Virus record (IMG/VR): IMGVR_UViG_3300045961_000282
Location: 124,001 to 188,000 of that record
Strand: one strand, 5' to 3'
DNA length: 64,000 bases
Below, piece after piece: positions 24,039-35,156 of the stretch (its first letter is position 1; each line of letters opens with the position of its first letter). Made by a program: the position numbers and the translations under genes. The notes under the pieces are model-generated. The model was not told the DNA's origin. It was given only the letters and a program-made list of their open reading frames with translations, and did not search any database.

Positions 24039-24389
24039 TCAGGCCTCGACGTGCTCCGGGGCCGGGGGGTTGTTCACGATGTAGGCATCCATGACGTGCT
24101 TCGGGATGCGGCCCCGATCCGGGACCGGCAGGCCGTTGGCCCGTGCCCACTGCCGGACCTCGCTGCCACCCTTCGAGCGGCGCTTGCCCGTGCGTGCGCG
24201 ACCGGCGATCGGGGTGCTGGTGGTCGGGCGGCCCGCGGCGATGAACGGGGCCAGCGCGTTGGCCAGCATCTCGCGGTTCGCCGCGCCGAGGTCGATCTCG
24301 TAAGACTTCCCGTCAAGGGCGAACGTCACGAGACGAACGCCGTCCTCGCTTCCATCGAGGTCGTCGATCTTCACCTGTCGCATTGCCAT
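24039..24389 (-). CDS. lsr2: Lsr2 nucleoid-associated protein / xenogeneic silencer
   Basis: DDLDG, FALDGKSYEIDL, VRQWARANG..V.DRGRIP. Confidence 0.95.
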   Translation of the reverse strand: MAMRQVKIDDLDGSEDGVRLVTFALDGKSYEIDLGAANREMLANALAPFIAAGRPTTSTPIAGRARTGKRRSKGGSEVRQWARANGLPVPDRGRIPKHVMDAYIVNNPPAPEHVEA

Positions 24390-24884
24390 CGTCATTCTCC
24401 TGTCGCTTTTTGGTGGGTGGTGGAGAAACAATATCGGACCCCACTGACATCGCGCGAGATGACATCACCACTTCAGCAGGATTCCGAGGAACAGGAACAC
24501 CCCCCATCCGAGCAGGAACACGGTCAGCAGGGCCATGTCGTCCTCGTGGTCGCGCTTCATGGACCGGAACCCTACACGCGCTGCTATGCTGGTGCCTTAA
24601 TTTGATTGGTTGGGCGAACCGGGACAGGCTTGGCTCCGCGTGTAGGAAGCCGGAGCGCTTTGCAAGGTCAGAGCATTTGACGTTTGACCTAGATTCCCGC
24701 CGCTCCCCGGGGAGCCAAGGCCCCGGCGCCTCATTCGAACGAGGTTGCCGGGGCCGCCTCATGCGCGCGACCGGCCCCGGTGGGGCAAACAAGCATTGGA
24801 CACCGATCCCGAACCCTCCCTAGAGTGAGTGCTGCCCGCGCTGGAACGCGGGCAGCACGAGCCCACCTAGGCAGAGGTGAACTG

Positions 24885-25586
24885 ATGACCAGTATGACCT
24901 GTTCGATCGACGGGTGCGACAAGCAAGCGCAGAAGCGCGGGTGGTGTATGGCGCACTACTCTCGATGGCACCGTCACGGGGACCCGCTCAAAGGCGGTCC
25001 CTCTAGGCAGTCGAGCGATGCTGTGACCTGTTCGGTCGATGGATGCGAGAAGAAGGTCCAGAGGCGCGGGTGGTGCGCGGCGCACTACACGCGATGGCGT
25101 CGCCATGGTGACCCGCTCAAAGGTGGCCCGACGATGCGTCCCAAGGACGTGCTCATCGAGGAGTGGTTTTGGACGCAGACCAAACCAAACGGCGACTGCC
25201 TTGACTGGACGCTGGAGACGAACAATCAAGGCTACGGACACTTCACATGGGACGGCGAAAACTGGCGCACCCATGTGTTCTCATGGCTCGTCACCAACGG
25301 ATCTACCAACGGCCTACAGGTTCTCCATCGCTGTGACCGACCGATGTGCGTGAACCCCGATCACCTGTGGCTTGGCACCATCTCCGACAACATGCGGGAC
25401 AAGGTGGAAAAGGGGCTTCAAGCACGAGGTTTCGCCCTGCCTCACACCAAACTATCCGATGATGATGTGCGCGAACTTCGCCTGCTGTGGGCGACCGGAA
25501 CGCTGTCGCAACAAGAAATAGCCTCCCAGTTCAGGATAACCGCGCCCTACGTATCTTTGATCGTGAACATGAAGCGGCGCCGGTAA
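24885..25586 (+). CDS. HNH homing-type endonuclease with a duplicated N-terminal zinc module and a C-terminal HTH
   Basis: CSIDGC..RGWC..HY.RW.RHGDP x2; VLHRCDRPMCVNPDHLWLGT..DN. Confidence 0.9.
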   Translation: MTSMTCSIDGCDKQAQKRGWCMAHYSRWHRHGDPLKGGPSRQSSDAVTCSVDGCEKKVQRRGWCAAHYTRWRRHGDPLKGGPTMRPKDVLIEEWFWTQTKPNGDCLDWTLETNNQGYGHFTWDGENWRTHVFSWLVTNGSTNGLQVLHRCDRPMCVNPDHLWLGTISDNMRDKVEKGLQARGFALPHTKLSDDDVRELRLLWATGTLSQQEIASQFRITAPYVSLIVNMKRRR

Positions 25587-25587
25587 G

Positions 25588-27432
25588 TTACCGCCTGCCC
25601 TTGTACGGAGAACGTTTTCCGAGGTTCGCTGCCCCTAGTGGCGGCAACCGATAGGCAGACATTGAGCGGGCACGCAGATTAGAATTGACGGCAAATGAAG
25701 CGCCCTTGACCTTGGTGGTGAGGGCCAGCGACGCCCAGACCATCGCGTCGAGACGTCCCGGAGATACCTTGGATTCCGCGGGGACCCATGAGGTGATCTC
25801 GGATTCCAACAGCGGGTGGTAGTTCAGCATATGCAGGCGGCCCTGCTCAGCAAGGGCCGCCACCGGCTCGGCGCGGGTTGCCTTGCCTGCTCGGGCGTGC
25901 ACGATGTAGACCGGCACGTTGGCATTCACCTGTCCGATGGCCATGCGGACCAGTTCGCCGCCCTGATTCCCCTCGGCCACCACTGGGCCGCCCCACTTGA
26001 TCGCCATGTCCACGACCCGCTTGGCCCAGACCGCCGGGCTGCCCAGCACGGTCGCATCCTCCACGACGTAGAGTTGGCGGCGGTAGAAGTCCCGCTCGGC
26101 GGTTCCCTTCACCACCACGATGCCCGCCTCGTCCTTGGGGCGCTCAGCAACACTGGGATCGACCCCGATCACCGTGTGCATCTTGATCCCGCCCGGCAGT
26201 TCGGTCACCCGTGCCGCATCGAGGTCGGACTGCATGAACAGCGCGCCCTCGATGTCGTGCAGCATCTCGCCCATCAGTTCCTGCTGGCCGATCCGGGTCC
26301 CTTCGTACAGGCCGAGGATCGTGGCGCGGAAGGACTGCGCAAGGTTGGCGAGGTTGTCATATGTCGTTCCACGGGTGATGACGATGCCGAACTCAGGATT
26401 CTCGGATTCCTCCAGCAGTTGGAACATCGAGGGAACGCGTCGCGGCGTGGTCGTGGCAACCATACGCGGCATGTCGCCATCAACCGGAAGTCGTAGACCC
26501 AGCCGCAAGTTGGCGAACGCCGTCAGACCATCGGCGCCGGAGACCTGCGGGTAGGAAGCAAACTCGTCGCAGTTGTGAATCAAGACTCCGGCGGCATAGA
26601 ACTCCGGCGCTCCGTTGATCGTGAGGTCATAGACATTGGCTCGACCCGCCGGGCGCACGGAAGCAACAGGAAACAGGGTGGTGCTCGAGTCTGTGCTGAG
26701 GCGGACGTGAACCATATCCCCGGCCTCGAGGTCGGCGGCCTGAACCCACGTGTCCCGCCTCGATTCGCTCGCCACCAACACGAGGTGATCGGGGGTGCAG
26801 CGCAATGTCGTCGGCCCGGCCTCGATCTCCACCACCTCGCGGTCGGTTCCCGTGCGCTGTGCGCGCGCGACCGGCCAGAAGCCGGAACGGGTGAGCACTT
26901 TCATCCCCGGCTGGATCTGTTCGATGGGCAGCGGCCCCAGCGAGGTGAGTACCGGCTCCCCTTCGGCTACGCACCACGCGGTGTCGAACTGGGGACCACG
27001 CAACTGGTCCGGCTCGTCGGCGGAGAAGGCCAATGCATACGCGCCGTTCGGCCACGACACCCGGCGCTTGGATGGCTCCCAGACGGGTACCTCGCCGGGT
27101 CGGGAGGACTCGATGATCCCCGACGGGCCGTTGACCATGACATCGCGGACGTCAGCAGCGGTGCGGCCCAGCAGCGCGATTCGCCTGCCGTGGCCATCGC
27201 GGACCCGTTCATTGATCCACTCAGCGGCGGTTCTCGTTTTCCCCCAACCCCGCCCTGCCATCGCCAGCCAAAGCACCCAGTCTCCGGACGGAGGGGTCTG
27301 GGAGGGCCTCCTCCAGAAGGCCCAATCGTGTATCAGCGACTCGGCATCAACCCCTTCAAGGGTCGCCTCGCGCTCCTCAGGGGGAAGCAGGGCGATGCGT
27401 TGGGCCATCGAGAGTTCGTGGCCGTAGGTCAT
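25588..27432 (-). CDS. terL: terminase large subunit (intein-containing)
   Basis: Walker A AGRGWGKT; LRGPQF..W-[intein]-CDEFA Walker B; TTTP; nuclease GVDPS, DEAGIVV and DAMVWA; leaderless TATGGT promoter. Confidence 0.92.
   Translation of the reverse strand: MTYGHELSMAQRIALLPPEEREATLEGVDAESLIHDWAFWRRPSQTPPSGDWVLWLAMAGRGWGKTRTAAEWINERVRDGHGRRIALLGRTAADVRDVMVNGPSGIIESSRPGEVPVWEPSKRRVSWPNGAYALAFSADEPDQLRGPQFDTAWCVAEGEPVLTSLGPLPIEQIQPGMKVLTRSGFWPVARAQRTGTDREVVEIEAGPTTLRCTPDHLVLVASESRRDTWVQAADLEAGDMVHVRLSTDSSTTLFPVASVRPAGRANVYDLTINGAPEFYAAGVLIHNCDEFASYPQVSGADGLTAFANLRLGLRLPVDGDMPRMVATTTPRRVPSMFQLLEESENPEFGIVITRGTTYDNLANLAQSFRATILGLYEGTRIGQQELMGEMLHDIEGALFMQSDLDAARVTELPGGIKMHTVIGVDPSVAERPKDEAGIVVVKGTAERDFYRRQLYVVEDATVLGSPAVWAKRVVDMAIKWGGPVVAEGNQGGELVRMAIGQVNANVPVYIVHARAGKATRAEPVAALAEQGRLHMLNYHPLLESEITSWVPAESKVSPGRLDAMVWASLALTTKVKGASFAVNSNLRARSMSAYRLPPLGAANLGKRSPYKGRR
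26572..26973 (-). mobile_element. 134-aa mini-intein (no homing endonuclease)
   Basis: Starts CVAEG; block B CTPDH; ends VYDLT...IHN followed by Cys+1. Confidence 0.92.
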
Positions 27433-27504
27433 GGGGCGAACCATATCCCGCCGTCTCGGGTGTCAACCGCGGTTCATGCTCGATTCACGCGCGATGAATC
27501 CCGC

Positions 27505-28464
27505 TCACCAGTCCCGCACCGGCACCATCGCTCGCCCGATCAAGTAGGTCCCCGCCTCGGTGTGGATGTCGACGTACTCCTTGGGTTCGATGTCGGCGCT
27601 GGCATGGACGTAGTAGGCCGGGCGCACCTCGTTCGGGCGCTTGTTCGGCGCCGCCGCGCGGGCCACGGCGAGGTCGATGTCCCGCAGGTACATCCGCACC
27701 GGGTCGATCAGCACGCGGGTCAACGACTGGGTTGAGTTGTGCACCGCCGAGGACCGCCAGCCCAGTGAGGTCGCCACCTCGGCCAGTGCGTTGACGATCT
27801 CAGGGCGCCGGGAGCGGATCACGACGTGGCGGCGCAGGCCGCGGTTGAACACACCCTTGCCATCGAGCGCCCCGGCCATCAAGTCACGGCGCACCTCCAC
27901 AGGCGCCCGCCGGTACGCGAGCGCGACCGGCTCGGAGAAGGCGTCGATGCGATGCAGCCGCTCCAGCAGCCCATCGACGTAGAGGTAGGCGTGCTTGCCG
28001 TGGGCAGTGCGGCGGCGAACCTTCAGGCCGCGGGCCTCGATCATCTCGGCGGCCCGGTCGGCGAGATTGGCCGGAACCGACACCGCATCCTCGATGCCGG
28101 TGGTCCGCCACAAACCATACGTCCACGGATCGAGCGGCGGCCCGGCCTCGAGCCAGTCCTCGGGGATCTCCCCGATGAGCGCGATCCGCTCGGTCACCAC
28201 CGGGTCGCGGCGCTCGGCCTCGCCGGGCCACGCCTTCATCGACACCCACGCAGTTCCCAGCACGAGGTCGTGGTCGGTCGAGCAGCGGATCGGCGGGCCG
28301 GAGATCCGCAGTTCGGTGGCTCGGGGCGGGGTCTCGCGGGCTACGCGCGCGACCGGGGTCGGCTTGCCGGAGGAGTCATAGAGCAGGTCGCCGGGAGCCG
28401 CGCGCCACGCCTCGATCCATCCGGTCGGGGAGACCAGCGGGGTCTCGGGATGGATGCTCGGCAT
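27505..28464 (-). CDS. free-standing intein-like Hint + degenerate LAGLIDADG protein without exteins
   Basis: Block A SIHPETPLVSPTGW..GDLLYD..GKPT; block B STDH; LDPWTYGLW and RRDLMAGALDGKG; TYLIGRAMVP block F/G; own leaderless promoter. Confidence 0.75.
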   Translation of the reverse strand: MPSIHPETPLVSPTGWIEAWRAAPGDLLYDSSGKPTPVARVARETPPRATELRISGPPIRCSTDHDLVLGTAWVSMKAWPGEAERRDPVVTERIALIGEIPEDWLEAGPPLDPWTYGLWRTTGIEDAVSVPANLADRAAEMIEARGLKVRRRTAHGKHAYLYVDGLLERLHRIDAFSEPVALAYRRAPVEVRRDLMAGALDGKGVFNRGLRRHVVIRSRRPEIVNALAEVATSLGWRSSAVHNSTQSLTRVLIDPVRMYLRDIDLAVARAAAPNKRPNEVRPAYYVHASADIEPKEYVDIHTEAGTYLIGRAMVPVRDW

Positions 28465-28482
28465 GAGCGAACCATAGCAATG

Positions 28483-28641
28483 TCAGCCCAGCACGGCGTG
28501 GATGGTGTGCCTGTCTCCAACTGTCATTCGGCTGATCTTCACCACCTCGATGTCGCGGCGCGCGTTGAGGGACTCAAGGATGTCGCCCAGCGCGATCTCG
28601 GCCTGCGCCTCGGTCCCAGTGATGTCCACGTTGATCTGCAT
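28483..28641 (-). CDS. 52-aa hypothetical protein (not in the ORF track)
   Basis: Open frame MQINVDITG..HAVLG with GC3-rich codons. Confidence 0.45.
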   Translation of the reverse strand: MQINVDITGTEAQAEIALGDILESLNARRDIEVVKISRMTVGDRHTIHAVLG

Positions 28642-28743
28642 GAGGAAGGAGGCTACCTGCTCGTGTTGATTCTGTCAGCCCCCTTGTGCTATGCTTATTC
28701 CTGTGAGCGAGGGAAAGTCCCTCCCCAACGAAAGGAAACCCCC

Positions 28744-28923
28744 ATGCAGGTGAACGTCCCGGTCCCCTTCCCCGGCACTGCCGAGGAACGCGCCGCCAAC
28801 CGCGCGACCCACTTCTTCGGCGGGATCGACGGGCGGTGCTTCGACTGCGACAGCCGCCCCACTCACGTGGCCGCCGACTACCCGTGCTGTGTCGAGCCGC
28901 CACGGATGTGGATCACCCGCTGA
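28744..28923 (+). CDS. 59-aa Cys-containing peptide in a class-II leader cassette
   Basis: Promoter, leader, RBS and terminator; CFDCD. Confidence 0.6.
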   Translation: MQVNVPVPFPGTAEERAANRATHFFGGIDGRCFDCDSRPTHVAADYPCCVEPPRMWITR

Positions 28924-28998
28924 CCCGATAGAGAACCCCCTCGACCAGATACCGGTCGGGGGGGTTTTCTGTGCTCGCCTCCGTGAGCCGCCGCCAGC

Positions 28999-30042
28999 CT
29001 ACCGCCAGAACTCGGGCACGGAGTGGTCGTGGTCCGTGCGGCGACACCACGGCGACGCCTCGCGCCACTTGTGGGCGTAGGACAGCGGCTCGTCGGTGTA
29101 GTCGTCGTAGTCCATCCCTTGGTGCTCGCACCACGCTCGATGCGCCGCCCGCGTGCACTCGGGGCGGGTCCACTGGCCCAGCCCCCGCAGCAGCGCCCGC
29201 ACCTCACGTGCGCGCGACCGGTGGGCTGGGGTGAACGTGCACGCCTCGACCACCAGTTCGTGGTGCATCGACCCCGGGATGGGCCGGGTGTCGGATTCCT
29301 CCCAGTTATAGCAGTCCGGCGGCAGGGCGCCCTTGCGCCACATCGTCACCGCCGTCATCCGGCTCGGCCCCCACTCGTGGTGCAGCCGCATGAACAGGGC
29401 GTCCACCGCGTCGAACGTGTTGCGGTTGACCCACTTGTTCTCCTTGCGCGGGATGGTCATGCCCGCCCGCTCCTCGAGGATGTCCTCGGTCCAGCCCAGC
29501 GCCATCAGTGCGCGGACCTGCCACAGCGTCCACTCCGCCGGGAACCGCTTGGCGTCGCGAACCATAAGGGCCGGGTTGGACTTCACCTTCTCGACCGTCA
29601 GCAGCAGCGTGCGTTCCGTGCTGCGCGCGACGTTGACCCGGCCCGGCGTGAGCACGCGGTCCAGCGCCCGGCGCTCCATCCCGGAGATGGCCTCGATCTG
29701 GGTCCACCGCAGGCCCTGCCCCCGCAGCCACGTCAGGGCCTCGACCGACGTCGCTGCCGGAACCCGGTCGTAGTCGCTGGGTATCCCCGCCTTCAGGCGC
29801 GCCCGACGCGCTCGCCACGTTTCCGCGTGGGCGTCCTTGCAGGGGCGACAGCGGCAGCCAAGTGAGTAAGAACTCTGTGACGGTGCGCTACATGTAAAGT
29901 CTTCATCTGTGCTCAAAGTTCCCCAACCTACTTTCTCTGGTCTGAACTTGTGTACGCTATCGTTGCCGCTGTTCACAGTGAAACAGGAGGTCGGCCATGA
30001 GTTATCCATGCGAGGTCGAAGGTTGCCATCGGGGAGATGCAT
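28999..30042 (-). CDS. phage DNA-binding protein (GCRC..C zinc motif plus HTH-like segments); true start probably near 29.9 kb
   Basis: YSLGCRCRPCK, WTQIEAISG and QVRALMALGW pattern seen in actinophage proteins. Confidence 0.6.
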   Translation of the reverse strand: MHLPDGNLRPRMDNSWPTSCFTVNSGNDSVHKFRPEKVGWGTLSTDEDFTCSAPSQSSYSLGCRCRPCKDAHAETWRARRARLKAGIPSDYDRVPAATSVEALTWLRGQGLRWTQIEAISGMERRALDRVLTPGRVNVARSTERTLLLTVEKVKSNPALMVRDAKRFPAEWTLWQVRALMALGWTEDILEERAGMTIPRKENKWVNRNTFDAVDALFMRLHHEWGPSRMTAVTMWRKGALPPDCYNWEESDTRPIPGSMHHELVVEACTFTPAHRSRAREVRALLRGLGQWTRPECTRAAHRAWCEHQGMDYDDYTDEPLSYAHKWREASPWCRRTDHDHSVPEFWR

Positions 30043-30812
30043 CCCGCCTCAGGGGAACGGAGGGCCCCCGCTTGTGCACCACCCACAAGCGGCAAATCAA
30101 GACGCGGGGCGAGGTGTGGCTGGTGGAAAAGTGGGTGAAGCCGCCCACCTGCGAAGGACCGGAATGCGACCGGGAGCCGAGGTTGCGCATCAAGGAAAGC
30201 GGGATCTGGCTGTGCAACTCCCACCGAATGCAACTGGCGAACGGGAAGCCGCTGACTCCGATCGGATCGACAGTTCATCGCGCCCCTGCGCGACCGGAAC
30301 GCCTCGCCCGAGAGTCCGACAAGGATCTGGCCCTGCGGCAGATGGTGGTCACCCCCGAACTGATCGGGAGGTTCTGGAGCAAGGTGGACGTTCGGGGAAG
30401 GGATGAGTGCTGGGAATGGAAGGCGTCGTTGACGGCGAGCGGATATGGGCAGTTCAGCCTTCGCTTCAAAGGCAAGTCCGTTCCTGTACCCGCCCACCGC
30501 GTGGCCAGAAGGTTCACCGAGGACGTGTCGGGGAAATGGGTGCTCCACTCCTGCGACAACCCCCCGTGCGTGAATCCTCAACACCTGCGGGTGGGGACGT
30601 CGAGCGACAACAACTCGGACATGGTCAAACGTGATCGTCATGTCTACGGCTCACGCAATCCCGTGGCCAAGGTGTCCGAAGAGCAGGTCAGCGAGATCAA
30701 GGCGCGCATCCGTGCCGGAGAACAGTTCACGGTGATCGCCGAGGACTACCCGATCTCTGCAGCGGGAATCGGGCACATCGCCGCTGGTCGCTCGTGGCGC
30801 CACGTCGAGTGA
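29997..30812 (+). CDS. HNH homing-type endonuclease
   Basis: CEVEGC, RFWSKVD, VLHSCDNPPCVNPQHL..GT..DN, C-terminal HTH. Confidence 0.9.
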   Translation: MSYPCEVEGCHRGDASRLRGTEGPRLCTTHKRQIKTRGEVWLVEKWVKPPTCEGPECDREPRLRIKESGIWLCNSHRMQLANGKPLTPIGSTVHRAPARPERLARESDKDLALRQMVVTPELIGRFWSKVDVRGRDECWEWKASLTASGYGQFSLRFKGKSVPVPAHRVARRFTEDVSGKWVLHSCDNPPCVNPQHLRVGTSSDNNSDMVKRDRHVYGSRNPVAKVSEEQVSEIKARIRAGEQFTVIAEDYPISAAGIGHIAAGRSWRHVE

Positions 30813-30843: not shown

Positions 30844-31269
30844 CTACTGGGCGAAGGGCATGAAGTAGACCTCGATGAGTTCGTGCTCCAACAGGTGGAG
30901 GACCTGATCGAGAACCGAGAGCGTAGTGGACAGGTGAGCCCGGGCGCGCGACACGTCCATCGGGTTCGGGTTGCTTCCGTCGCGCATCAGCCGACCGATG
31001 GCGTCGTCGGCCTTGATCACCCGGATGCGCGCACGCGAGAAGGTGTCGGCGACGAACTGGGGATGGTGGCCCGCGGCGATCTCGAGGCTGTCGTCGCCCG
31101 CCTCCTCGAGTTTGGTCATCAGGGTCACCACCCCGGCCAGTCGGTACCCGGCGTCGGCGAGGATGCGCTCGTTGGCCAGCGCGGCGTAGGTGTCCAGATG
31201 CAGCAGGGCGCTGGTGATCCCCTCCACCGCCTCGCGGATCAACGGGAGGAGGATGCGGTTGTCGGTCAC
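30844..31269 (-). CDS. hypothetical helical protein
   Basis: Overlap chain of minus-strand ORFs. Confidence 0.6.
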   Translation of the reverse strand: MTDNRILLPLIREAVEGITSALLHLDTYAALANERILADAGYRLAGVVTLMTKLEEAGDDSLEIAAGHHPQFVADTFSRARIRVIKADDAIGRLMRDGSNPNPMDVSRARAHLSTTLSVLDQVLHLLEHELIEVYFMPFAQ

Positions 31270-31655
31270 CGCAGGGCAGTCCTCGGAAGTGCGTACACCT
31301 CGGATCCAGCGAGGAGCGTCCCGGCGTAGGCAACCGAGCGGGCGAGGATGTCGACCTCGTCGCGCAGCGATCCGACCGGGACGATGCGGTCGGTCAGGTG
31401 CCGATGCGCCATGTACGCGCGCGACCGGAGATCGGTGAGCAGCGAGGTCGGGTCGAACGGGCTGACCACGACCGCCCCGCCAAGGAGCACCACGACGTTC
31501 GACAGGGACTCATGGGCGATCTGTACCTGCTTGTGCGCTTCGGTCCAATCGGCCTCGTCACCGCGACGGGTGTAGGCGTTCAGCAGCGCTCCTGCCCCGC
31601 TCAGCCTGATCTCGGCGCGGGCCACCAGTTGCTCGATCTCGTCGCCGAGCCTCAT
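31266..31655 (-). CDS. hypothetical helical protein
   Basis: Overlap chain. Confidence 0.6.
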   Translation of the reverse strand: MRLGDEIEQLVARAEIRLSGAGALLNAYTRRGDEADWTEAHKQVQIAHESLSNVVVLLGGAVVVSPFDPTSLLTDLRSRAYMAHRHLTDRIVPVGSLRDEVDILARSVAYAGTLLAGSEVYALPRTALR

Positions 31656-32137
31656 CGCATCGGCCCCCAGACCTCGCGGACCGACCCGTCGGGCAACTCG
31701 ATGCGCTCGTGGGACATCCAGCGCACCGGGCAGCGCAGCGGGTAGTGCGGGATGGGGCGCCCCATGCTGTGCACGGCTCCTCGTGCGGTGTCGACGGAGA
31801 TCCACTCGGTGAACATCCCGTCGGGCATCAAGTGGACCTCGATCCGCTCGGCGGCGTGGATCGTGCCGTTCAGGTAGTGGCGCATGTCCCCGACGGTGAT
31901 CCTCCCGTGGATCACCGCGTCGATCTCGATCTTGGCCTGGGACAGGCCGAACCGGAAAAGCATCAGGTCGTTCGGGTAGCCGATGTAGGTCACACCCTGC
32001 GGATCACGCAGCACATCGAGGTCGTCGGCCAGTTGGACAAACTCCTCGTGGCGAGCCGGTCCGTTGGGCATCCGGAAGATCATGTCCATCCGCTCCAACA
32101 GCGGGACTGTGAAGTCCGCGGCGTTCAGCGCGCCCAT
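31652..32137 (-). CDS. hypothetical protein
   Basis: ATGA overlap; GC3 bias. Confidence 0.65.
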   Translation of the reverse strand: MGALNAADFTVPLLERMDMIFRMPNGPARHEEFVQLADDLDVLRDPQGVTYIGYPNDLMLFRFGLSQAKIEIDAVIHGRITVGDMRHYLNGTIHAAERIEVHLMPDGMFTEWISVDTARGAVHSMGRPIPHYPLRCPVRWMSHERIELPDGSVREVWGPMR

Positions 32138-32490
32138 ACGGGTCCCCCATCACTCAGCGTCGGGAACCGCGAATCCGGCGGCATGGCATGACCCTCGACC
32201 CGGCGCGCGAGGTTGAGGGCGGCTTGGACGAAGGTGAGCGCCCACACCCCGGTGGTGGGGTCGAAGCGGTTCTCGAGGATCGCGCGGATCTCCTCCTCGG
32301 CCCGGTACAGGTGCGCGCACATCTCCTCCAGCACCTCAGCCGGGGCGACGTAGTGCACCCGCCTCCCCTCGCGGACGCGCCGCAGGTCGTCGGCGATGGC
32401 GCGAAGTCGAACCGGGTCGTTGGGCAGGGTGTTCAGCGCCGCCTGCAGGTCGTCGGCCAGCGGCTCGATCTGCCGGTAGACGCTCGTCAT
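32125..32490 (-). CDS. hypothetical helical protein
   Basis: ATGA overlap with the upstream gene. Confidence 0.6.
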   Translation of the reverse strand: MTSVYRQIEPLADDLQAALNTLPNDPVRLRAIADDLRRVREGRRVHYVAPAEVLEEMCAHLYRAEEEIRAILENRFDPTTGVWALTFVQAALNLARRVEGHAMPPDSRFPTLSDGGPVWAR

Positions 32491-32870
32491 GCCCACTCCC
32501 GGCCCTTCTGGTCCACGGCGATGATCCAGTTCGTCCTCGGCAGGACATGGACCTCGATCTCGGTCGCGGCGGCGTACGCCTCGGTGAGGAAGTGCATCGC
32601 CCAGTGCTGGGCCTCCTCGACCTCAGTGCCGTTGCGGGCGGTCATCAGCAGGGAGATCTCTCTCTTGGTCCGATCGAGGTTGATCCGCAGGGTCCGCTCC
32701 CGACCGAGCGGCCCGACGTAGACGAAGGACGATCCCTGAGCCAGCCGGTAGAGGGTGTCAACAATGGCATACAGCGGAGTCTTATCGTTGTGGCACACCT
32801 TGAAGGCCGAGCGCAGGTCCTCGATGATCGGACCCACCATCGAGTCGGCAGTGGTAGTAGTGGTGATCAT
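32487..32870 (-). CDS. hypothetical protein (leaderless)
   Basis: TGC-TATGCT -10 element 6 nt before the ATG. Confidence 0.65.
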   Translation of the reverse strand: MITTTTTADSMVGPIIEDLRSAFKVCHNDKTPLYAIVDTLYRLAQGSSFVYVGPLGRERTLRINLDRTKREISLLMTARNGTEVEEAQHWAMHFLTEAYAAATEIEVHVLPRTNWIIAVDQKGREWA

Positions 32871-33500
32871 CCCCAAAGCATAGCAGGCCGGTCGCGCGCA
32901 CCCGGGGGGCTCGAATCCACGACCCGACATGACAGAGGCCCCGAACCGCTTGACACGGGTCGGGGCCTCTGAAAAGGTTTGGTCCGTCTACGACAACCTC
33001 TGGGTCCCATGGTAATCCCGAACCGTGGCGCACGTCAAGCGTATTGACGCCCTGAGCGCGATGATCTGGGGCAGACCGTGGATATGCAGAGAGACCCTCC
33101 TGCATACAGGGAGCCGGGGATAGCAAGGGACCTCCGTCTTTGATCGGGAGGCCCCCCTACGAAATAGGGGGAGAAGGCCGTCAGAGGGCTAGTCAAGTTG
33201 AGCGTCCACCCGAGCGGGTTTCAGGAGCACCATCCCGCCACAGGCACAGAGGTGGGCGCATTGTTATGGCCCCGCAGGGATGCGGGATCCCAGCAGACCG
33301 TGCTGGCAGGGAGTAATCGCCCTGTCTATGGGCGCACCCGAGAGGTGCGTGCGGAACATCCGCCCTTGAGAATCCTCAGTTGCCGTACCCAGTTCAACGA
33401 TTGCTAATCCGCGAACTGGGTCGGCTCCTTGAGGATCGACCAGAACCCGCAGATCAAGGCCTCCCATGGGTTCCACAGATACAGGGAACTGCGGGACCCG

Positions 33501-34754: not shown

Positions 34755-35156
34755 ATGACGGTGACGGTTATGGTTGTTCAGCAGGATCTGACCCTCTGGC
34801 ACCTGCACAGTGCGTGCGCCGACCCGGACATCTCCGCCGACATATGGTTTGACGACGCCGACACCGCGCGCCGGATCTGTGGTCGCTGCCCCGTGCGCAA
34901 CGCCTGCCTGCAATATGCGATGGACGTCGAGGCTGACGGCGAACGGCTGCATGGAGTGTGGGGCGGATTGAGTCCCATCCAACGGCAGCGACTGCGCGAG
35001 AATCCCGAATCGCTGGATCGAATGCGCCGCGTGAGGTCCAAGACCCGGCTGCGCTCCCTGCCCTCACCGCGGATCAAAGCCGAGCAGCCACAACCGAAGC
35101 ACGAACTCCACCCCGTCCAACTGACCCTGATTGATTTGACTCAGCACACCGCCTAG
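34755..35156 (+). CDS. whiB: WhiB-family Fe-S transcription factor
   Basis: C...ARRICGRCPVRNACL.YA...GVWGG. Confidence 0.92.
   Translation: MTVTVMVVQQDLTLWHLHSACADPDISADIWFDDADTARRICGRCPVRNACLQYAMDVEADGERLHGVWGGLSPIQRQRLRENPESLDRMRRVRSKTRLRSLPSPRIKAEQPQPKHELHPVQLTLIDLTQHTA

Follow-up and report, generated by a model that had tools for sequence, protein, structure and literature searches.

A phage gene located immediately upstream of terL, the gene for the DNA-packaging enzyme, is a whole intein without any host protein around it. It has lost its splicing and DNA-cutting residues, yet selection has kept it intact in a small family of related phages, so that a selfish element seems to have been recruited for a new function. 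The gene, ORF319, codes for 319 aa on the minus strand at 27505-28464 of the window, i.e. the whole 64,000-nucleotide stretch of DNA analysed (positions 124,001 to 188,000 of IMG/VR record IMGVR_UViG_3300045961_000282). The observation made in the initial annotation, of an orphan intein lacking exteins, the terminal His-Asn and the catalytic acidic residues, was confirmed. Its interpretation as a nuclease-dead DNA-binding protein, possibly a regulator or packaging factor, was only partly supported: intein origin, loss of the catalytic residues and maintenance by selection hold, whereas DNA binding and a specific role are inferred and the proposed analogy to WhiA/WhiB is not supported.

Sequence and predicted structure of ORF319

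The features of the region, all on the minus strand, are the following:

27505..28464 (-), ORF319, free-standing, extein-less derivative of a class 3 intein with a LAGLIDADG domain (319 aa plus stop)
28165..28464 (-), Hint N-lobe, residues 1-100 (model strands 9-62), with block A (invariant Ser3 at intein position 1; TPLVSPTGW) and block B (invariant Ser62-x-Asp64-His65-Asp66; the class 3 Trp is Leu67)
27640..28164 (-), LAGLIDADG-type domain, residues 101-275, with two LAGLIDADG helices (113-122 and 189-203), predicted catalytically dead
28087..28137 (-), LAGLIDADG motif 1, PLDPWTYGLWRTTGIED; the catalytic Asp position is Thr122 (Thr/Ser/Ala/Leu in the family) and Asp126 is invariant
27853..27891 (-), LAGLIDADG motif 2, RRDLMAGALDGKG; the catalytic Asp position is Lys203 (Lys or Arg in all 15 tabulated members) and Asp201 is invariant
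27505..27639 (-), Hint C-lobe, residues 276-319, plus stop; block F Cys is Tyr297, block G Thr-His-Asn is Val316-Arg317-Asp318, and one further residue (Trp319) precedes the stop
28468..28476 (-), TATGGTTCG, a -10-like TATGGT placed 6 nt before the ATG (candidate promoter for a leaderless mRNA)
25588..27444 (-), terL (Terminase_6N/6C), directly downstream; the likely true start is the ATG at 27432, preceded by TTGACA-N15-TATGGT-N7
26572..26973 (-), class 1 mini-intein in TerL (134 aa, Cys1...His-Asn, +1 Cys), inserted just before the Asp-Glu of Walker B
28999..30042 (-), ORF347, the upstream neighbour (phrog_1590, HTH-like)
28483..28641 (-), ORF52, inside a roughly 520-bp insertion

ORF319 starts with MPSIHPETP and ends with VPVRDW. 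An independent Logan contig of 39.9 kb, which may come from the same sample, covers 25500-29100 with no differences. To test if the similarity to inteins is beyond chance, we searched 1.84 billion proteins with phmmer. This gave 375 hits at E<=1e-3, and those beyond the family were inteins inside larger proteins, aligned over query residues 6/7-317. In a tblastn search, TerL inteins of cluster J mycobacteriophages were hit over residues 7-318, and the family profile hit the class 3 MchDnaB1 intein structures 6RIX/6RIY over blocks A-B and F-G at E 7e-10. The homology is therefore far beyond chance and runs the full length. The AlphaFold2 model (pLDDT 87.6, pTM 0.88) matched PI-SceI in Foldseek (E 1e-14, TM 0.71), followed by the TliVMA and PI-PfuI inteins and by I-DmoI (E 7e-6); mini-inteins were matched as well. 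The model thus contains the predicted Hint fold and a monomeric fold with two LAGLIDADG helices at its core, the latter matching PI-SceI domain II and I-DmoI.

No exteins are present, since only two residues lie before intein position 1, an in-frame stop lies 6 codons upstream of the ATG (open frame of 325 aa), and the stop codon follows the residue after the intein's last position. ORF52 is in the same frame as ORF319, separated by TGA plus 5 codons, and was considered as an N-extein. This was rejected because a stop intervenes, no homologue was found, and other loci have no such upstream frame. The family member at locus L002 lacks the insertion.

Each catalytic position is replaced. The class 3 residues Trp (B:12), Cys (F:4) and Thr (G:5) are represented by Leu67, Tyr297 and Val316, and by Leu/Gly/Val/Cys, Tyr/Phe and Val/Ala/Ser across the family; in MchDnaB1, the triad is Cys124-His65-Thr143 with Trp67 (PMC7664689). 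The C-terminal His-Asn is Arg317-Asp318, of which Asp318 is invariant in the family, and the +1 position, Trp319 in ORF319, is Trp, Cys, Tyr, His, Ser, Phe or Ala in the family. The acidic residues expected at the C-terminal end of each LAGLIDADG helix are Thr122 (GLWRTTG) and Lys203 (GALDGKG), while canonical relatives have GDG and SDG/TDG at the same alignment columns.

The mini-intein without an endonuclease domain reported in terL by the initial annotation was also confirmed; it is inserted at FDTAW|CDEF. It shows only generic similarity to ORF319 (E 0.008), and ORF319 is not a copy of it. The leaderless promoter is plausible but rests on inference from sequence: TATGGT sits 6 nt before the ATG, the block TTGCTATGGTTCGC is conserved in the L002 orthologue, and locus L003 has TAGCCT at the same spacing. 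This TANNNT-N6-ATG arrangement was found by eye and by motif counts, whereas a simple sigma-70 consensus scan found no promoter. Among sequencing runs, no RNA run was listed, and one DNA run, probably the source sample, holds the region.

Conservation and genomic context of the family

The initial annotation had named neutral decay among homologues, absence of a Hint/LAGLIDADG fold and fusion to an extein as outcomes that would speak against it, and none of these was observed. Sixteen intact metagenomic homologues of 309-319 aa (33-88% identity) without frameshifts share the same boundaries and the same kind of replacement at each site. In the table of 15 members, the boundaries are the same in 14, the exception being a partial entry; of two shorter database entries, one is a mis-called start and the other a partial. 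About 50 invariant positions are spread evenly over both domains. In a phylogeny with 40 canonical class 3 inteins, the family forms a 100/100 clade on a long stem outside them.

Pairwise Nei-Gojobori dN/dS gave values of 0.2-0.97 across all pairs, lowest (0.20-0.29) among the closest pairs, but is unreliable here because synonymous sites are saturated. A codon model was fitted instead, giving an omega of 0.106 and rejecting omega = 1 (2dlnL 1061), although with saturated synonymous sites omega is model-dependent. The Hint part (0.110) and the endonuclease part (0.106) are equally constrained; the TerL N-terminus gives 0.04. GC3 of ORF319 is 0.90, among the highest in the region and typical of resident genes, against 0.69 and 0.77 for the flanking HNH genes.

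terL follows directly in all 9 loci that can be read, while the upstream neighbour changes three times. The ORF347 family lies upstream in L002 and L004 but not in the second sub-clade. There, the start of the gene overlaps the upstream stop (TGATG), and terL follows within 8 to about 20 nt. Locus L004 has the gene but an intein-less terL (GW|ADEF), so the gene does not depend on the terL mini-intein.

Further relatives were sought in several collections. A pattern search plus tblastn in IMG/VR found none beyond the source genome, and none was found in 185,579 species genomes. Megablast of the region against isolated phages gave no match. In tblastn searches of 50,697 phage records with ORF319, a sub-clade 2 member and two extein-less intein-like proteins from other phages, P0062 (locus L090) and P0129 (locus L092), the listed hits all lie in intein-bearing genes and none is free-standing; a Microcystis phage hit lies inside an 886-aa gene. 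A scan seeded with P0062 and P0129 returned 80 loci, all canonical inteins inside open frames of at least 617 aa. The best of them, L135, is a TerL P-loop intein, and the Arthrobacter FB24 intein Arth_1007 was not among them. A TerL-seeded search of IMG/VR gave 80 loci with TerL mostly 38-48% identical overall (best segments up to 60%); none holds a homologue of ORF319, ORF347, the glycosyltransferase or Lsr2, so that they say nothing on presence or absence. A profile search with the intein alignment was swamped by candidates and gave no new free-standing members.

Interpretation and alternative explanations

We propose that ORF319 is a domesticated intein. In this view, an ancestral class 3 intein carrying a LAGLIDADG homing endonuclease came to stand alone just upstream of terL and then lost the Trp-Cys-Thr triad, the terminal His-Asn and both endonuclease Asp residues, while purifying selection on both halves kept the whole fold. 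The protein would act as a non-catalytic binding module built on the PI-SceI-like surface formed by the Hint lobe and the LAGLIDADG saddle, recognising a specific DNA site in or next to terL without cutting it. The obvious candidate is the ancestral homing site of class 3 TerL inteins, the P-loop-coding segment, where binding would either shield the site from incoming intein endonucleases or modulate terL. The analysis itself shows the full-length homology, the modelled Hint plus LAGLIDADG architecture, the replacement of the catalytic residues, the intact and constrained family with resident-type GC3 and its own clade, the adjacency to terL, the presence beside an intein-less terL, and two independent extein-less derivatives upstream of terL in other phages. 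By contrast, DNA binding, absence of cleavage and any function are inferred. Binding is suggested by analogy with PI-SceI, whose Asp mutants bind but do not cut, and a Lys or Arg in place of the metal-binding Asp would face the phosphate backbone.

That ORF319 is an intein derivative kept by selection is very likely, DNA binding is tentative, and any one specific role is doubtful; the proposal as a whole is only somewhat more likely than not. The endonuclease-like domain of ORF319 is basic (net +8), but the other 15 family members have a median of -2, against +5 for canonical class 3 inteins, so that most have lost the positive charge and are neutral or acidic. On present evidence no target site can be named, and adjacency to terL, the only evidence for a regulatory or packaging role, could be inherited linkage within one phage lineage rather than functional coupling. 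A complex prediction for the L004 protein with its TerL fragment scored 0.00, which for this method is no evidence either way.

Among the alternatives, a terminase accessory or small-terminase-like factor, acting through contact with TerL or recognition of the pac site in the slot where terS usually lies, is possible but unlikely. It would fit the position directly 5' of terL in 9 of 9 loci and the tight spacing in the second sub-clade, and the loss of positive charge would fit a protein partner better than DNA. Moreover, in L090 and L092 an extein-less intein-like gene is the only gene between divergent or regulatory genes and terL, with portal-like and MuF-like genes following terL in L092. 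No recognisable terS was found, since PF03592 is absent from the genome and Pfam, PHROG and NCBIfam scans of the neighbours gave none. However, terL is followed here by Lsr2 and not by portal, so the module is not canonical. ORF347, with Terminase_5-like look-alikes, could itself be terS in sub-clade 1, and a 223-aa gene upstream in L092, with motifs similar to those of terS proteins but a single PHROG match of unknown function, could be terS there. ORF319 has no Pfam, PHROG or NCBIfam TerS match, and its predicted fold is unlike any known TerS; only its position fits. Also unlikely is a still selfish free-standing homing endonuclease or nickase with a non-canonical active site, kept next to terL as its target. 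Free-standing endonuclease genes typically sit beside their target, the region is a hot spot with two HNH genes and a terL intein, P0062 and P0129 keep both Asp residues, and Asp126, which would lie just after LAGLIDADG helix 1, and Asp201 are invariant. Nevertheless, both metal-binding positions are replaced in all 15 tabulated members, no active LAGLIDADG enzyme is known to lack both, and strong, even purifying selection and resident-type codon usage are not what a homing cycle of invasion and decay predicts.

The remaining explanations are very unlikely. A decaying relic, with an ORF open only because stop codons are rare in 65% GC DNA, would agree with the loss of the catalytic residues, with the pseudogene status assigned to Arth_1007 (PMC3196547) and with the many long spurious ORFs in the window, but is close to refuted by the intact homologues down to 33% identity, the omega of 0.106, the GC3 and the evenly spread invariant positions. 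Collaborative homing, as happens for some phage group I introns, in which ORF319 would mobilise the endonuclease-less terL mini-intein lying about 0.5 kb from its 3' end, is contradicted by the lost nuclease residues, by a complete Hint domain of another class and by L004, and is the least likely of all. The initial annotation also suggested a WhiA-like factor working with the phage WhiB. WhiA is a nuclease-dead LAGLIDADG protein, a WhiB gene lies at window 34797-34994 (+), and WhiB genes lie near the family in loci L007 and L097. However, WhiB is widespread in actinophages, and the gene here lies 6 kb away on the other strand. A Pfam scan of ORF319 at E<=1 gave only Hom_end (E 0.0065, below the cut-off) and a stray weak hit (Spo7_2_N, E 0.094), with no WhiA_N, LAGLIDADG_WhiA or HTH_WhiA match and no HTH. 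ORF319 has a Hint domain, which WhiA lacks, its relatives are inteins, and it is not related to WhiA beyond the LAGLIDADG fold.

Comparison with related systems

Class 3 inteins with LAGLIDADG endonucleases occur in actinophage TerL, Cas4-like exonuclease, RecT/Rad52 and DnaB proteins (MP-Be DnaB, MchDnaB1; PMC2807308, PMC7664689, bioRxiv 10.1101/2025.01.02.630785). ORF319 shares with them full-length homology at 21-31% identity, architecture and block order, the phage setting and the association with terL, but lacks exteins, the triad, the His-Asn end, the +1 nucleophile and both endonuclease Asp residues, and belongs to a separate long-stemmed clade. [quoted passage not shown] It is a single locus in a prophage remnant that keeps its endonuclease Asp residues (Asp123 and Asp219, mutated for the experiments) and lacks the block B His, whereas ORF319 keeps this His, has lost both Asp residues and belongs to a 16-member family under purifying selection. 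Yeast HO, a domesticated relative of the VMA1 intein PI-SceI, is likewise a free-standing Hint plus LAGLIDADG protein derived from an intein and recruited by its host. HO is an active nuclease with a C-terminal zinc-finger domain, while ORF319 lacks the nuclease residues and ends at block G with no extra domain. WhiA and LAGLIDADG maturases also keep a LAGLIDADG fold as a binding scaffold after losing the catalytic acids, but have no Hint domain and do not derive from inteins, and WhiA has a C-terminal HTH, absent here.

Inteins are usually treated as purely selfish elements that are either active or decaying, and HO, the only well-known recruited intein, still cuts DNA. A family that has lost the residues for both activities yet is strongly conserved at a fixed place next to terL would be the first case of an intein scaffold reused for a non-catalytic job. 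If the protein binds a long DNA site without cutting, it would also be a natural 'dead meganuclease' scaffold. A bolder reading, which we consider doubtful, is that a whole intein has been exapted as a catalytically inert specificity factor for the terminase gene or enzyme, either as a DNA-site guard that blocks homing endonucleases of incoming TerL inteins or as a new kind of packaging-site or TerL-binding subunit in the terS slot. In this reading, the appearance of extein-less intein-like genes upstream of terL at least twice independently, and of unnamed viral clusters of 310-351 aa with the same fold in the ESM Atlas, would make this a general, overlooked fate of inteins in viruses.

The family also gives a testable route from TerL intein, to free-standing endonuclease gene beside terL, to inert binding protein, with P0062 and P0129 as natural intermediates. 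Both are extein-less class 3 derivatives with dead splicing residues located directly upstream of terL, and their nearest relatives are TerL P-loop inteins. Unlike ORF319, they keep both LAGLIDADG Asp residues and a basic charge (pI 9.5-9.9), and they branch among canonical inteins and not with the ORF319 family. The L090 TerL is 52% identical to the L004 allele of this TerL family.

An intein-derived ORF without a host protein

The window (C1:124001-188000 of a 206-kb viral record with 65% GC, estimated to be 99% complete) carries WhiB and Lsr2 genes and, therefore, looks like part of a large actinobacterial phage. One DNA run, from a freshwater sediment metagenome, holds the region. The features relevant to this study are, in window coordinates:

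24039-24431 (-): Lsr2 gene, with dimerisation and DNA-binding domains
24780-25586 (+): HNH_3 / His-Me finger endonuclease gene
26572-26973: mini-intein within terL
27505-28464 (-): ORF319, the intein-derived ORF, 319 aa
28465-28998: intergenic region between ORF319 and ORF347, with about 520 bp that locus L002 lacks
28483-28641 (-): ORF52
29997-30812 (+): second HNH_3 / His-Me finger endonuclease gene
30844-32930 (-): four consecutive small ORFs
34797-34994 (+): WhiB-family gene

The GC3 of ORF319 is 0.90, which is among the highest in the region. An independent Logan contig of 39.9 kb, probably from the same sample, covers positions 25500-29100 without a single difference.

In order to identify relatives of ORF319, we performed a phmmer search against 1.84 billion representative proteins, which gave 375 hits at E<=1e-3. 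Four hits below 1e-30 are proteins of about the same length, namely the query itself and three relatives, of which the 264-aa entry P0002 has a mis-called start. From 4e-14 downward, the hits are larger proteins in which residues 6/7-317 of the query align to an internal segment. The hosts checked are RecT, Rad52-like and PD-(D/E)XK proteins, while in isolated phages the hosts are TerL, Cas4-type exonuclease and DnaB. In alignment with ORF319, these relatives carry the class 3 signature: a non-nucleophilic first residue, His-x-Trp in block B, Cys in block F and Thr-His-Asn at the end. The family profile hits the structures 6RIX/6RIY of the class 3 MchDnaB1 intein at E 7e-10, over blocks A-B and again over blocks F-G. 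The catalytic residues of that intein are Cys124, His65, Thr143 and Trp67 (PMC7664689).

An AlphaFold2 model built on the same alignment has a pLDDT of 87.6 and a pTM of 0.88. Its best PDB matches are PI-SceI (E 1e-14, TM 0.71-0.73), the TliVMA, PhoVMA and PI-PfuI inteins, and then I-DmoI. Nearly all matches in BFVD and the ESM Atlas are intein-bearing viral proteins, many of them terminases. However, ORF319 begins only two residues before intein position 1 and ends one residue after the last intein position, and an in-frame stop lies six codons upstream. These results indicate that ORF319 is a whole intein without a host protein.

Next, we checked the positions required for splicing and for DNA cleavage. 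As shown in the table, the canonical residue is replaced in ORF319 at each of them, and both activities are predicted to be lost. Canonical relatives have GDG and S/TDG at the two helix-end columns, and, in the model, both positions are the last helical residue before a Gly, which is the canonical geometry.

Table. Residues at the splicing and endonuclease positions (canonical residue; ORF319; 15 tabulated family members)
Block B, B:12: Trp; Leu67; Leu/Gly/Val/Cys
Block F, F:4: Cys; Tyr297; Tyr/Phe
Block G, G:5: Thr; Val316; Val/Ala/Ser
Block G, G:6: His; Arg317; Arg (Trp once)
Block G, G:7: Asn; Asp318; Asp (invariant)
LAGLIDADG helix 1 end: Asp; Thr122; Thr/Ser/Ala/Leu
LAGLIDADG helix 2 end: Asp; Lys203; Lys/Arg

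Conservation of the family and its position next to terL

To test if ORF319 is a relic or a conserved gene, we collected its homologues. Sequence and profile searches found 16 members in all (proteins P0001-P0006 and P0166-P0175), which all come from metagenomes. Full-length members are 309-319 aa long and their pairwise identity runs from 33% to 88%. Two database entries are shorter, since P0002 has a mis-called start (the full ORF is L002:442-1383) and P0175 is partial. Fourteen of the 15 tabulated members, all except the partial P0175, start with M-x-S-[IVL]-[HR], and their C-termini all follow [PA]-x-[RW]-D, then one residue (four in P0005) and the stop. Fifty positions are invariant among the nine aligned members, and they are spread evenly, with 15-16% of each of the Hint N-lobe, the endonuclease-like domain and the Hint C-lobe.

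A codon model (IQ-TREE GY+F3X4, 10 sequences, 297 codons) gave an omega of 0.106 for the whole gene, and fixing omega at 1 costs 2dlnL = 1061. Omega was 0.110 for the Hint part and 0.106 for the endonuclease part, while the first 89 codons of TerL from the same loci gave 0.04. Pairwise Nei-Gojobori values ranged from 0.20 to 0.97 and were lowest among the closest pairs, although dS is saturated. In a tree with 37 canonical class 3 intein segments and three other extein-poor proteins, the family forms a 100/100 clade on a long stem, which fits a burst of change followed by constraint. Therefore, ORF319 belongs to a conserved gene family and is not a relic.

In all nine readable loci (the window and the homologous loci L002, L004, L005, L006, L007, L008, L097 and L098), terL follows directly, while the upstream neighbour varies. 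It is an HTH-like phrog_1590 protein (the ORF347 family) in the window, L002 and L004, and a beta-1,4-glycosyltransferase (phrog_13126), whose stop overlaps the start of the ORF (TGATG or TAATG), in L005-L008, L097 and L098. Divergent genes are found in L003. The TerL exteins are 72-83% identical among these loci, while the ORF drops to 33-36%.

The TerL mini-intein (134 aa, class 1, at FDTAW|CDEF) is polymorphic. It is present in the window, L002, L007 and L098, and absent in L004, where the junction reads GW|ADEF and the +1 Cys is Ala, so the ORF does not depend on that intein. The two share only generic Hint similarity (E 0.008). The mini-intein evolves faster than the exteins (49-71% against 72-83% identity; pairwise dN/dS about 0.3).

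In the window, L002 and L003, a TANNNT hexamer lies exactly 6 nt before the ATG of the ORF, and it is TATGGT within a conserved TTGCTATGGTTCGC block in the window and L002. The same arrangement is found for terL in the window and in four of five sub-clade 2 loci whose junction was read, while in L002 and L097 the hexamer lies further upstream. TATGGTTCG occurs 13 times in the window (27437-27445, 28468-28476 and 11 other sites) against 0.11 expected, which is about 100-fold over-represented, and 37 times in the genome. Several intergenic copies follow a CTCGAG-containing upstream block and look like a phage promoter class, although others are coding (Met-Val-Arg). A leaderless promoter is therefore plausible from sequence alone. 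Since terL has TTGACA-N15-TATGGT-N7-ATG, its real start is probably 27432, not 27444.

Two other proteins from the same search stand free and lie directly upstream of an intein-less terL. One is P0062 (370 aa) in locus L090, whose TerL is 52% identical to the L004 allele of this TerL family, and the other is P0129 (372 aa) in locus L092, where terL is followed by portal-like and MuF-like genes. Both have lost the splicing residues but keep both LAGLIDADG Asp residues and a basic charge, and they branch among canonical inteins, apart from the ORF319 family. Their nearest relatives are TerL inteins, for example a P-loop intein in a Micromonospora prophage (E 2e-57). So, extein-less class 3 derivatives have settled upstream of terL at least twice, and only the ORF319 line has lost the nuclease residues. 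The ESM Atlas also lists clusters of unnamed viral proteins of 310-351 aa (52-204 members; one cluster is mostly Nucleocytoviricota) which resemble ORF319 by language-model features, and one of them also matches by structure, aligning over 299 residues at TM 0.78/0.76. They could be further extein-less intein derivatives, or intein fragments called as genes.

Inferred function and comparison with known inteins

The observation made in the initial annotation, an orphan and apparently domesticated intein beside an intein-containing terminase gene, is confirmed. Its interpretation is supported only in part: domestication is well supported by the analysis, while DNA binding and any specific role remain inferences, and the suggested analogy with WhiA working together with WhiB has no support. 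The scaffold in PI-SceI binds a long DNA site with both lobes, and replacing a metal-binding Asp with Lys or Arg would suit binding without cutting. However, the net charge of the endonuclease-like domain speaks against a general DNA-binding role. It is +8 in the window protein, but the median is -2 in the other 15 family members, compared to +5 in canonical class 3 inteins and +6 in the three other extein-poor proteins (P0062, P0129 and P0087). A complex prediction of the L004 protein with its TerL fragment returned no answer, and no terS could be recognised in the genome or among the neighbours, so that a packaging role can be neither excluded nor supported beyond position. The residues around the former splicing centre are invariant in non-canonical form, namely Ser3, Ser62-x-Asp64-His65-Asp66 and Asp318.

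A recent survey of actinophage inteins describes class 3 TerL and Cas4 inteins and unusual endonuclease arrangements but, in the passages searched, mentions no extein-less intein (10.1101/2025.01.02.630785). Our literature searches found no description of a conserved, doubly inactive, free-standing intein. The closest precedent is Arth_1007, a class 3-like intein with exteins of 52 and 14 aa that does not splice and was called the first decayed intein pseudogene (PMC3196547). It keeps its endonuclease Asp residues and is a single locus. HO is the known recruited intein, but it cuts DNA, while WhiA and the maturases are dead LAGLIDADG proteins that do not derive from inteins.

Other elements of the region and the genome

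The two HNH_3 / His-Me finger endonuclease genes contain repeated N-terminal zinc-ribbon motifs, lie on the opposite strand and bracket the ORF347-ORF319-terL block. Their GC3 is lower (0.69 and 0.77), as expected for recent mobile invaders, and the second one overlaps the 5' end of ORF347 by 46 nt. ORF52, within the approximately 520 bp that L002 lacks, is in frame with ORF319 and separated from it by TGA plus 5 codons. The same stretch may also hold a Cys-rich small ORF on the + strand ending at 28923. No homologues were found.

Downstream of terL, an Lsr2 gene and not a portal gene is located in the window, where an HNH gene lies in between, and in L002 (L002:3476-3793). The ORF in L007 (L007:11129-11620) is Lsr2-like as judged by eye from its sequence only. 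WhiB-family genes lie within a few kb of the ORF319-terL pair in three loci, the window, L007 (L007:5022-5390, -) and L097 (L097:71-454, -). The L007 gene was identified by eye from its sequence, while the other two have Pfam hits. This is probably just typical actinophage content.

Outside the window, the genome holds a second canonical intein (G000:C1:43548-45608; L094:1036-3096), which is of class 1, Cys1...Thr-His-Asn|Thr, inside a 686-aa protein at ...VLDLK|C. Judged by eye from its sequence alone, the host protein is taken to be a PD-(D/E)XK / Cas4-like exonuclease. The LAGLIDADG motifs of this intein look degenerate (LLGLLAAVQ, WLSGFSAMA), so its endonuclease seems to be decaying. Finally, the four consecutive small ORFs at 30844-32930 (141, 161, 123 and 147 aa) have no Pfam or PHROG match, and they seem to share a C-terminal E-x-H-x-[ML]-P motif, which suggests a tandem paralogue array.
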